A program made the position numbers and the translations under genes. Shown piece by piece: positions 1,553 to 4,460 of a DNA stretch of 64,000 nt (position 1 is the first letter of the stretch; each line of letters starts with the position of its first letter). Source of the DNA: Hyaloraphidium curvatum SAG 235-1 (taxonomy: Eukaryota; Fungi; Monoblepharomycota); contig JAIVFI010000033.1 in NCBI GenBank assembly GCA_025558095.1, positions 434,001-498,000 of the forward strand, written 5' to 3'. The notes beneath the pieces were generated by a model. The model was not told the DNA's origin, ran no database searches, and worked only from the letters and a program-made list of their open reading frames with translations.

Positions 1553-1704
1553 TGTTTGGACGGAGTGGTACGGTATCTGGGTAGGTAGGGCGCAGAATCT
1601 GAAGGGATTTTGTCTCCCGCCAACATGCACACTCTTCATCTCCTGCCTTTCTTCGGATTGCAGATTAGGGACGTTGAGTGAAGGAAGCAATTTTGGAGGG
1701 CGCG

Positions 1705-3337
1705 ATGGCGGGGGAAAGCTCCGGCGACGCGTTTCCCGCCGTCTCCACCTCGCTTCCGGACGCGGTCTTCTCGCCTCCCGAGTGGCTGGCCCTCTTCCCT
1801 TCCGCACTACCGCCGCCGACCCGGATCTCGTCTCCCAGCTGGCGCTTGACTCCAGCAAACGATCCAGCAGCGGACCTGCGCGAGGCGCGGCCCCTGACCG
1901 CCGCGGCCATGCTGGGGGCTTTCGCACCGTATGCGGGTCTGCACGCCGTCGTCAAGTGGTTCTTTCTCCTTCTTCCGGTCACTTCGCACCGGGCGCCGTG
2001 GCCATTTGTTGCTGCTGAAACTGGCCTTGTCGTGCTCGCCGTCGCGCTGTGCCTCTTCGGCGCCGGGGAGTTCACCGCGGCGAGCCTGGCCGTCGGAATC
2101 CTACCTGTTGTCTCGTCTTGGGCCATCATGATCTACCGTTTCGTGCGAAGCCGTTATACCATGGTCAGCCCGAAGCGCGGCGGCCGCTCCGCTGACTTTT
2201 CGTCCCACCCGTTTGCCGGCATGGCGAGATGGCTGCAGCTTGTCCGCCCTGCCGAGGGCGAACTGGACGGGCGAGAGGTTGTTGGGACTGCGCCGGACGT
2301 CGCAGCTGTTGGCGCTAGCAACGGCACCAAAGGAGCTGTCTTGCACATCGGACTCGTCTCCCACGTCGACGGGGACCCGCATTGCCCGTGCGTTGTTTGC
2401 GCAGAGGATCTACCAGGCCTTGCAGGGCACCTGCGGATCTTAGAGCATGTCGCGAGGAGCATCATGAACTTTGCGTACGCCCTCTTTATGCTCCCGGCCC
2501 TCTTCAGCTTCCCAACCAGGGTTTGGACGACGTGGTGGACCGCCGTGGCCGCCGCGCTTGGGATCATCGGCTTCGCCACGGGCTGCATCATCTACATCGG
2601 GGTAAGAATACCCATCAACGTCGCCGCTCTCGAGCTCGAAGGGCGGCTTCATCGGCGCGCCCTCCGCATCGCTCTGCGGGACCTGCTCGACTGGTACGCC
2701 GCTGCGCTGAACAGTCCCGTTGACGGCACCGAGATGCGCATCAAGCCAGCGGCGGAAGAAGTCTACGTGATCCTGTATTCCATGCTCGTCGCGGGTTGGC
2801 GGAATCGCTTCCCTTCCTTGCTTACCGGCATTGGCTTCCTCGGGCTGAACATGGTCCTGCCCATCGTCGCCGCCATCGCCACCATGGTTGGTATTTGGGA
2901 CGCCACGCTGTTTCCGTCCGCCGGTCCTGACCCCGTTGCCCCAGATCGCTGGTTCCTGCGTCCCGATCTGGATCATCGTGATCCTCGTCACCTGCTTCAT
3001 GCTTCTCCTCATCGACCTCGTCAACCATGCGGCATCCAACGCCCAGATCGCGGCCTCCACGGAGCTCCTTCGGCTCGCCCGGGCAGAAGTTCACCGGCTC
3101 CTCGTCTCCTCCCCCGCAGGGCATCCCGCCCGCCCGGCGCTGGAACAGCACGCGGGTCTGATGGCCGCGTTCGGCGACGCGGCGGGGCTCGGAGCAAGGT
3201 TCGGAGGCGTAGTGATCGACTACGGCGTCGTGAGGACGGTCGGGGCAACTGTGTTCACCGTCGGGCTGGGGCTGTGGAGCTTGCTTAGGGGCGCATCCAT
3301 CTTCTTCGAGGTTGGCGTGGCTTGCCCGGCGCGCTGA
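1705..3337 (+). CDS. Multi-pass membrane protein, candidate 7TM ion-channel/gustatory-receptor-like; paralogue of 53980-55551
   Basis: Two exons with intron 2887-2944 (GTTGGT...CCAG) and about 7 hydrophobic segments. Shares HVxGDPxCPC, GSCVP, AAxNAxI and ARFxGxxxxYG motifs with the 54-55 kb gene. Confidence 0.75.
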
Positions 3338-3475
3338 GGCATCGCCGCAGTAACTGCAGCATAGGATTGAGGTCTTGAGCAATGGAAAAGCGGTCCATCC
3401 ACGGAATGAATCACCCTGCATCCCTCACTCAGCACTCGTCCGCACAGCAAAAACACGTCCGCCCACCAGACAACC

Positions 3476-4460
3476 ATGGCCCTCCGTGGACCCGCCGTTG
3501 TCGTTCTGCTCGTGCTCGCTCTCGTCCCGCTCGGCGCCCTCGCGCAGCAGACCGCCGGGACGGGCACCACCGGCACGGGCACCACCTTTGCCCCGACCTT
3601 CTCCACTCCGACCACCACTACGGCGGACACCGGCACACTCGTCCGCGTGTCCGCGTCGGCCACCGCCACAGCGCGTCCGGACAGAGTGCGAAGGGCGTAC
3701 GACCCGCAGAAGGCGCCCGCTGACTCACCGTTCCGCAGGCCATTCTCCTGATCGAGGTTTCCACCACCAACCGCACCGCCCAGGTGGGCTGGAATTGCTT
3801 TCTCATCGTCATGATATGTGAACTCCCCATGCCGACGATCAGGACGCCTCGAACACGAACGCCGCGCTCTCCTCCCGCGTCTCGGCCTCGGTCAACTCCA
3901 CCCTCTCCTCCCTAGCACCCGGCTCCACCCTCGAGACCCTCTCTATCTCCCTCTCTCCCGTGTACAACTACTCCAACACCCCGCCGGTCCTCGTCGGTTT
4001 CCAAGCATCGCAGATCTTCAAGACAACATTCGACGCCTCCCCTGCCGACCTCGGTCGCGCCGTCGGCGCTGCGATCGACGCGGCGGTGAGCTCTGGCGCC
4101 ACGGGACTGCGAGGGATCCTCTTCACTGTGCGTGATCCGGCTGCGCTGGAGGCAACGGCGCTGGCGCTCGCGGCCAGGAGGGCGGCCACGGAGGCCGATG
4201 TGCTGGCCGGGGCGCTCGGGAGGTCCGTAAAGAGGATCATCTCGGTCGACGAAACCGGAGGGGGAGGGGCGACGCCGGTGCCGACGGAAGTTGCTGCGGC
4301 GTCGCCTGGGGCGGGAGGGACAGGGGCGGGGGGCACGCAAGTGGTTCCGAGGTGGGTGATGGGCAGCGACCAAGCTGTGGTGCGATGCTGAACCCTGAGG
4401 ACGACGCCCAGGGCCGTGGAGGCCGTCTCGAGCGTCTCTCTGGAGGCGGAGGTCTCGTAG
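3476..4460 (+). CDS. Secreted SIMPL/DUF541 (YggE-like) domain protein
   Basis: Signal peptide, then VRVSASATATARPD, ISLSPVYNY...LVGFQAS, AIDAAVSSGA and AxxLAGALG. Three short introns; the last exon AVEAVSSVSLEAEVS ends at TAG 4458-4460. Confidence 0.8.

Follow-up and report, generated by a model that had tools for sequence, protein, structure and literature searches.

A large, divergent family of seven-transmembrane proteins in Hyaloraphidium curvatum with the predicted architecture of insect odorant and gustatory receptors

Results

We analysed a 64-kb stretch of the Hyaloraphidium curvatum genome (C33:434001–498000, in an assembly of 31.9 Mb and 55 contigs), here referred to as the window, with position 1 as its first letter. 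Two genes in the window, referred to as gene A and gene B, encode related membrane proteins, which an initial annotation had proposed as candidate members of the seven-transmembrane ion channel (7TMIC) group, typified by the odorant (OR) and gustatory (GR) receptors of insects. The coordinates of the identified features are listed in Table 1.

Gene A consists of two exons and encodes a protein of 524 residues, with the stop codon at 3335–3337. The second open reading frame (ORF), which carries the C-terminal motifs, lies in the +1 frame; the frame change means that the length of the intron must be 1 modulo 3, and 2887–2944 is the only GT...AG pair that fits. In the public run X1 (2018, contigs), a 1722-nt contig with an adapter remnant at its start maps to 1647–2885 and 2944–3402 with 0 mismatches. 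As a contig without the intron must come from RNA, gene A is transcribed and spliced as predicted, with an mRNA from approximately 1647 to approximately 3402 and the first ATG at 1705. A frameshift or sequencing error at 2887–2944 was ruled out by the clean GT..AG splice in this contig. The interval initially given for gene A, 1705–3337, proved to be exact from the start codon through the stop codon, and the motifs GSCVP, AASNAQI, ARFGGVVIDYG... and HVDGDPHCPCVVC were all found in its translation.

In the public annotation, the protein P0055 (788 aa) agrees over its residues 1–516 with residues 1–516 of gene A, after which it continues into the SIMPL/DUF541 gene downstream. Since the X1 contig ends at 3402 without a splice to that gene, this fusion is probably an annotation artefact, at which two genes were merged in error.

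Gene B is intronless. Its ORF encodes 544 aa, while a start at Met22 (position 55551), the equivalent of which is used by most paralogues, would give 523 aa. The initial annotation had noted that 53980–55551 keeps the same motifs as gene A despite low overall identity, which we could reproduce (25% identity). BLASTP of gene B aligned with exon 1 of gene A at 27% identity (E 1e-10) and with exon 2 at 32% (E 4e-14). A local profile scan detected no family members in the window other than these two genes.

To count the members of the family, as the initial annotation had suggested, we searched the six-frame translated genome with gene B, which gave at least 118 matches (654 first-look candidates, of which 80 were scored). 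An in-frame stop, indicating an intron or a pseudogene, was found in 16 of the genome matches. A HMMER search of 1.84 billion representatives, with a profile of 28 full-length paralogues (alignment A1), retrieved 453 proteins at E<=1e-3, of which 411 also passed E<=1e-10 and 299 passed E<=1e-30. Among the 150 best of these matches, 20 were sampled, and all of the 20 were singleton hypothetical proteins of H. curvatum; relatives from other organisms would lie in the weaker remainder. The family protein records have accessions of the form KAI90xxxxx and are named 'hypothetical protein DFJ74DRAFT_... [Hyaloraphidium curvatum]'. On the other hand, a word-index homologue search with gene B and A1 returned one paralogue, P0002, a result that says nothing on other taxa; as HMMER found 453 proteins, the word index carries no information for a family so rich in Ala.

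Across the 110 members of a larger alignment (A2), pairwise identity had a median of 27%. The family is therefore composed of several hundred old and divergent members in one genome, so far only that of H. curvatum, and resembles a chemoreceptor repertoire in its size and divergence. This low identity, together with the spliced transcript of gene A, ruled out a repeat that is carried by transposons or was amplified recently.

Part of the family is clustered, at C1:1506748–1521185, C12:252858–256702, C15:129103–138286, C41:309039–368211 and C5:783104–817884, with more local grouping of the genome matches on C31. In-frame stops occur in several fragments that retain only the C-terminus, among them three that lie on C1 inside 15 kb. 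The local clusters and the stop-bearing fragments suggest that the family undergoes birth-and-death evolution and leaves pseudogenes, much as chemoreceptor families of animals do.

Family-averaged hydropathy revealed seven hydrophobic segments, and seven transmembrane (TM) helices were present in the AlphaFold2 (AF2) models of gene B (28-sequence alignment; predicted local distance difference test, pLDDT, 86.3; predicted template modelling score, pTM, 0.86) and gene A (110-sequence alignment; pLDDT 86.4; pTM 0.88), in line with the approximately seven segments first read from the sequence. The gene A model is that of P0055 residues 1–516, which places the last 8 residues of gene A, including Cys521, outside the model. 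In both models, the long TM4–TM6 extend into the cytosol as an anchor domain, and TM7 consists of two parts, TM7a and TM7b, with a beta-hairpin between them, which is the TM7a/TM7b arrangement that had been expected. The hairpin is an RF-G-x-V-I-D-Y-G turn, corresponding to the stretch first noticed as ARFGGVVIDYG. An F-x-G-F-x-(I/L)D turn, which had been described at the outset as an established feature of GRs, ORs and DUF3537 proteins, was not found in the surveyed 7TMIC literature. The N-terminal region (approximately 95 residues), which is well predicted, is conserved and has the motifs E-W/L-L-A-x-L/F-P and D-P-A-x3-R-x3-P-L-T. A four-copy complex prediction of gene B residues 296–544, a low-confidence fragment run without the family alignment, returned no answer (score 0.00) and counts neither for nor against a tetramer.

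The N-terminal region and the intracellular loops (IL1–IL3) contain 29.6 Lys+Arg per protein (density 0.119), compared with 1.6 (0.033) in the extracellular loops (EL1–EL3) and the C-terminal tail (n=110). This strong positive-inside signal predicts that the N-terminus is cytosolic and the C-terminus extracellular, the orientation initially expected and the reverse of that of G-protein-coupled receptors (GPCRs).

Conservation was highest in EL3 (0.70), TM7b (0.61), the His/Cys motif of IL1 (0.58), the C-terminal tail (0.53) and the hairpin (0.50), and lowest in TM1–TM4 (0.26–0.30). This is the same pattern as that published for 7TMICs, in which conservation is found in the anchor, the pore and TM5–TM6, and divergence in the N-terminal half that binds ligands (10.1101/2023.08.30.555482). 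TM7b, which is conserved more than any other helix of the family, is the candidate pore helix. Its consensus is T(98%)-V/L-x-V-G-L-W-S/G-V/I-L-R, and its conserved residues, in gene B numbering, are Arg510 (94%), Thr515 (79%), Thr518 (98%), Gly/Ala522, Trp524 (74%), Ser/Gly/Thr525, Leu527, Arg528 (88%) and Gly531 (97%). Residues 515, 518, 522, 525 and 529 form a small/hydroxyl stripe along one face of the helix, which suits either pore lining or tight helix packing. An Arg is present at both ends of this putative pore helix, the inner being 510 and the outer 528 (8% Lys in the latter).

The initial annotation had also pointed to a His/Cys loop as a possible metal or redox site. The His and the three Cys of the motif His-x6-Cys-x-Cys-x(2-4)-Cys are invariant in the 110 sequences of A2, and H-x(5-8)-C-x-C-x(1-6)-C was found in 145 of the 151 retrieved family proteins, most of the six exceptions being short; such conservation goes far beyond chance. 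The motif is located in the predicted cytosolic IL1, 4–18 residues before TM3. The invariance of the residues was confirmed, while the metal or redox role itself is a reasonable proposal; a structural Cys3His zinc site, which would brace IL1, is the simplest reading and probably the right one, with cysteine palmitoylation or a redox switch as alternatives. Neither zinc nor cysteine motifs are mentioned in the surveyed reports of fungal 7TMICs.

A second set of conserved cysteines lies on the predicted extracellular side, with Cys413 in EL3 (100%) and Cys540-Pro541 in the C-terminal tail (98% and 89%; gene B numbering). As Cys413 and Cys540 are in or beside strands that pair in the models, a disulfide is suggested, which may staple TM7b, at its outer end, to TM5/TM6.

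Foldseek ranked BmGr9, AgamOR28, Gr64a, MhOr5 and Orco first for both models. VIA-align, a separate search of 48,161 representative chains of the PDB, had only insect OR/GR chains in its first 7–8 rows for both models, with near-complete coverage of those chains; in the rows below them (MSP1, Sso2, MukF and designed bundles), only 134–226 residues of helical bundle were aligned. The best structure matches in the ESM Atlas were unnamed cnidarian and arthropod clusters, with a template modelling score (TM-score) of 0.47 by query and 0.61 by target. Thus, in the structure comparison that had been called for, insect ORs and GRs were the best matches in the PDB and no other fold was preferred.

The resemblance extends to the lengths of individual elements, denoted by S in the receptor literature. 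Gene B was compared with the values for BmGr9 and MhOr5, respectively (PMC11100771): S4, 61 residues against 52 and 54; S5, 50 against 53 and 52; S6, 48 against 45 and 45; S7a, 20 against 15 and 15; the S7a–S7b linker, 12 against 14 and 13; S7b, 24 against 21 and 25; and the S5–S6 loop, 4 against 5 and 2. Among the hallmarks described for GRs and ORs is a beta-hairpin that lies between S7a and S7b (PMC12635824). Of three qualitative features used to recognise 7TMICs, namely the packing of the TM helices, long TM4–TM6 helices that form the anchor, and a split TM7 (PMC9998090), the second and the third are visible in the DSSP strings of our models, and the packing was addressed via alignment scores alone. 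Taken at the level of the predicted models, a 7TMIC architecture of the insect OR/GR type is supported for the H. curvatum family. The initial family assignment is therefore supported as regards the fold, for both paralogues, with channel and chemosensory function as putative properties.

GPCR-type receptors would likewise have seven TM segments and could form a large family of divergent members. However, apart from the predicted cytosolic N-terminus, GPCR chains appeared in Foldseek at rank 35 or lower with a probability of <=0.06, none was among the top 50 VIA-align rows, and no GPCR family was matched in Pfam. With the wrong topology and the wrong fold, a GPCR identity was rejected, and this explanation is close to refuted.

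Several observations weigh against the assignment of the family to 7TMIC channels. Neither gene B nor either exon of gene A, each searched separately, had a Pfam match at E<=1, families such as 7tm_6, 7tm_7, DUF3537, PHTF and those of GPCRs included, and hmmscan of the 28 A1 members against Pfam at E<=10 detected no relevant family. A profile search of all PDB sequences returned noise only (E >=0.55). From the TM7b signature of GRs, (T/S)Yhhhhh(Q/K/E)(F/L/M) (TYhhhhhQF), only the Thr is conserved in the family. The best Foldseek E values were weak (2e-3 and 8.6e-3), with TM-scores of 0.20–0.41 and high root-mean-square deviations; set against a benchmark of >0.5, the PDB chains thus reached 0.20–0.41 and the Atlas cnidarian cluster 0.47/0.61, both with the N-terminal region and IL1 unmasked. 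Moreover, both structures are predictions from alignments of single-species paralogues, the Arg at the outer end of TM7b runs counter to the positive-inside trend and would be unusual for the mouth of a cation pore, and the surveyed literature contains no demonstration of conductance for 7TMICs outside insects.

These observations could in part be explained by an unrelated, lineage-specific membrane family whose likeness to 7TMICs is convergence or an artefact of prediction from paralogues only. Besides the lack of detectable sequence similarity to known families in Pfam and the PDB and the Foldseek E values of only 2e-3 to 9e-3, language-model neighbour clusters, taken as a lead only, count for this explanation, since the nearest named cluster for gene A was TMEM39 (0.89) rather than a 7TMIC family; the clusters overall included DUF3537 (0.90 and 0.85), 7tm_7 (0.81–0.82) and TMEM39 (0.89–0.93). 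On the other hand, two independently built models (28 versus 110 sequences, for proteins that are 25% identical) concur, insect OR/GR chains alone occupy the top of the VIA-align ranking while unrelated rows align with short stretches of bundle, and several specifics coincide, namely the split TM7 with its hairpin, the helix lengths, the very short TM5–TM6 loop and the inverted topology. We therefore consider convergence or artefact improbable.

Table 1 Features of gene A and gene B. Positions are those of the window; residues are those of the respective protein
Feature	Position	Strand	Residues	Content and basis
Gene A 5′ untranslated region	1647..1704	+		Start of the RNA-derived contig of run X1 at 1647; first ATG at 1705
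Gene A exon 1	1705..2886	+	1–394	Cytosolic N-terminal region, TM1–TM4, IL1 with His/Cys motif, cytosolic extension of TM4, most of TM5; ORF, 100% identity to P0055 residues 1–394, family-profile match, AF2 model
Gene A His220-x6-Cys227-x-Cys229-x2-Cys232	2362..2400	+	220–232	Invariant columns in alignment A2; codons checked
Gene A TM4			277–336	AF2 model
Gene A intron (58 nt, GT..AG)	2887..2944	+		ORF frame change; X1 contig skips 58 nt
Gene A exon 2	2945..3337	+	395–524 and stop	End of TM5, EL3, TM6 and its cytosolic extension, TM7a, beta-hairpin, TM7b, C-terminal tail; ORF, BLASTP to gene B E 4e-14, profile match, AF2 model
Gene A TM5			353–397	AF2 model
Gene A EL3 GSCVP, Cys399	2957–2959 (Cys399)	+	399	Landmark of exon 2
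Gene A TM6			402–449	AF2 model
Gene A TM7a, beta-hairpin and TM7b	3131..3292	+	457–476, 479–484 and 487–510	DSSP of AF2 model (hairpin strands 479–480 and 483–484); conservation profile
Gene A tail Cys521	3323–3325	+	521	Landmark of exon 2
Gene A 3′ untranslated region	3338..3402	+		X1 contig end at 3402
Gene B	53980..55614	-	1–544	Intronless; ORF, alignment A1, AF2 model, fold searches
Gene B N-terminal helices			25–31, 52–63, 68–78, 80–93	AF2/DSSP
Gene B TM1			95–116	AF2/DSSP
Gene B TM2			130–157	AF2/DSSP
Gene B IL1			between TM2 and TM3	His/Cys motif at 202–216; AF2/DSSP
Gene B His202/Cys209/Cys211/Cys216	54967–55011	-	202–216	Gene B ORF
Gene B TM3			220–245	AF2/DSSP
Gene B TM4			265–289	Continues as cytosolic helix 294–325, then a variable low-confidence loop; AF2/DSSP
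Gene B TM5			362–411	Initial ~30 residues cytosolic; AF2/DSSP
Gene B EL3			between TM5 and TM6	Four-residue loop, G-S-C-V/I-P; AF2/DSSP
Gene B TM6			416–463	Long cytosolic extension; AF2/DSSP
Gene B TM7a			474–493	AF2/DSSP
Gene B beta-hairpin			498–503	Strands 498–499 and 502–503; AF2/DSSP
Gene B TM7b			506–529	AF2/DSSP
Gene B C-terminal tail				Short; strand 533–535 pairs with EL3 413–415; AF2/DSSP

Immediately upstream of gene A, a gene transcribed from the other strand (698–1510, -) encodes a PhyH protein (phytanoyl-CoA dioxygenase; Pfam E 3e-32), and a functional tie to the 7TM family is not apparent. Downstream of gene A lies the SIMPL/DUF541 gene, which encodes a Thr-rich protein with a signal peptide and a SIMPL/DUF541 domain (Pfam E 4e-33); the fusion of the two in P0055 concerns 3309–3480 and 3476–4400 (+). 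Gene B is adjoined, in divergent orientation, by a gene encoding a microbial-type poly(ADP-ribose) glycohydrolase catalytic domain (PARG_cat_microb; 56029–56856, +; Pfam E 1e-45). An ORF at 51716–53212 (-) shows weak similarity to SUEL-type lectins (Pfam E 6e-4, below the gathering score) and may be no gene, as long ORFs overlap on both strands in GC-rich sequence.

Discussion

Gene A and gene B are probably expressed-type members of an H. curvatum family with the 7TMIC fold and, as a putative function, ligand-gated channels. The insect ORs and GRs to which the models are closest (Orco, MhOr5, AgamOR28, AaegOR10, BmGr9, Gr43a and Gr64a) are tetrameric ligand-gated cation channels. They share with the family seven TM segments, a predicted cytosolic N-terminus, the S4–S6 anchor, the S7a/hairpin/S7b arrangement and a very short S5–S6 loop, as well as a conserved C-terminal half, a variable N-terminal half and a large, divergent family. 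Unlike them, the H. curvatum proteins show no detected sequence similarity to 7tm_6 or 7tm_7 in Pfam and lack the TYhhhhhQF motif but for the Thr. They also have a much longer IL1 (~69 residues) with the invariant His/Cys3 motif, a conserved N-terminal region of ~95 residues, the EL3/C-tail Cys pair and a fungal host, and for them channel activity is a putative property.

In the surveyed literature, fungal 7TMICs are reported only in Chytridiomycota and Blastocladiomycota, and gustatory receptor-like proteins (GRLs) are found as one copy each in Spizellomyces punctatus and S. palustris (Benton et al. 2020, PMC7746228). Counts of GRL/DUF3537 proteins are 6 in Thecamonas and 4–12 in higher plants (PMC7746228). 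Like the H. curvatum family, GRLs and DUF3537 proteins are non-animal 7TMIC candidates that were recognised mainly via topology and fold, with a largely degenerate TM7 motif. That motif has been termed 'diagnostic, but not definitive', and one of its four positions is retained in the chytrid GRLs (PMC7746228), as in the H. curvatum proteins. The DUF3537 cluster is also among the nearest language-model neighbours of the family, which is a lead only. However, GRLs and DUF3537 proteins occur as single genes or small families while H. curvatum has several hundred, no DUF3537 match was obtained in Pfam, and a His/Cys loop is undescribed there. No paper in the literature searched treats Hyaloraphidium together with 7TMICs, and a supplement of Himmel et al. 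mentions neither Hyaloraphidium nor fungal taxa.

The comparison with PHTF-like (Class-B) 7TMICs, which have a long IL1 and N-terminus and are of unknown function (Benton & Himmel 2023; Himmel et al. 2023), raises another explanation, at which the family has the 7TMIC fold but a different role, PHTF-like or uncharacterised, for example as an internal-membrane channel, a scaffold or an IL1 metal/redox sensor. PHTF proteins have the 7TMIC core, a long N-terminal region and an extended IL1, traits that are milder in the H. curvatum family, and their Z scores against Orco (11.8–12.9; PMC9998090) are comparable to those of the family against insect receptors. Class-B proteins are defined by their long IL1 and an N-terminus of ~100 residues, close to the ~95 residues seen here, and the conserved Arg at the outer end of TM7b also fits a role other than that of a cation channel. 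Conversely, the mean IL1 length of 69 is far below the >300 residues of PHTF, whose proteins have ~760 residues, and there is no PHTF match in Pfam or in sequence. PHTF has moreover been described as one conserved clade whose members are few in each genome (D. melanogaster has a single gene and humans have two), whereas several hundred divergent paralogues, with TM1–TM4 the most variable and TM7b the most conserved, suggest ligand diversification and not housekeeping. We regard such a different role as unlikely, although it is the most serious competitor to ligand-gated channels.

The biology of the organism also bears on this choice. H. curvatum, a planktonic and non-motile fungus, is described as a non-flagellate member of the Monoblepharidomycetes and is not known to have a flagellate stage. 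The description of the host as a zoosporic fungus in the initial annotation thus fits the lineage but not H. curvatum, and zoospore chemotaxis is an unlikely role for the family. A sensory repertoire in a non-motile organism would have no obvious behavioural output, which favours a role other than chemosensation.

Returning to ligand-gated channels, each subunit would begin with the ~95-residue cytosolic N-terminal region, followed by the variable TM1–TM4. Since the equivalents of TM1–TM4 in insect receptors help to form the ligand pocket, the variable pocket formed by TM1–TM6 may, by analogy, bind the ligand here. The cytosolic projections of TM4–TM6 would form, together with TM7a, the anchor bundle, after which come the beta-hairpin, the highly conserved TM7b and the extracellular C-terminal tail. 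As in insect receptors, four subunits might assemble via their anchor domains so that four TM7b helices line a central pore, and binding of a ligand in the variable half would then open it to ions. Of the 85 7TMIC tetramer models that have been published, 83 show TM7b on the axis, with contacts through TM7a and the extensions of TM4–TM6. The His/Cys loop in IL1 most likely carries a structural zinc, and the EL3/C-tail Cys pair may tie TM7b, by its outer end, to TM5/TM6. A more far-reaching proposal, that H. curvatum has ~450 functional ligand-gated 7TMIC channels in which the Cys3His loop and the Cys pair couple the metal or redox state to gating, is possible but can be put forward only tentatively.

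Conclusions

Outside animals and plants, 7TMICs have been reported as single genes or small families, and as channels they are known from insect ORs and GRs only. The H. curvatum family is a hugely expanded sequence orphan within the 7TMIC fold, and its His/Cys3 loop is undescribed for the 7TMIC superfamily in the surveyed literature. If the tentative proposal is true, ~450 channels would be the largest chemoreceptor-type 7TMIC expansion outside animals in that literature, and the metal/redox coupling would be a regulatory module not known from insect ORs and GRs. With several hundred divergent, transcribed members in a single fungus that can be cultured, the family would show that the 7TMIC fold has expanded to the scale of a repertoire outside animals too. 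The genes, intronless or with one intron and ~1.6 kb in length, would offer a tractable non-animal system for studying whether ancient 7TMICs are gated by ligands and what they sense, in which the His/Cys3 loop and the extracellular Cys pair, as features that can be mutated, could reveal how the anchor domain is coupled to the pore helix.

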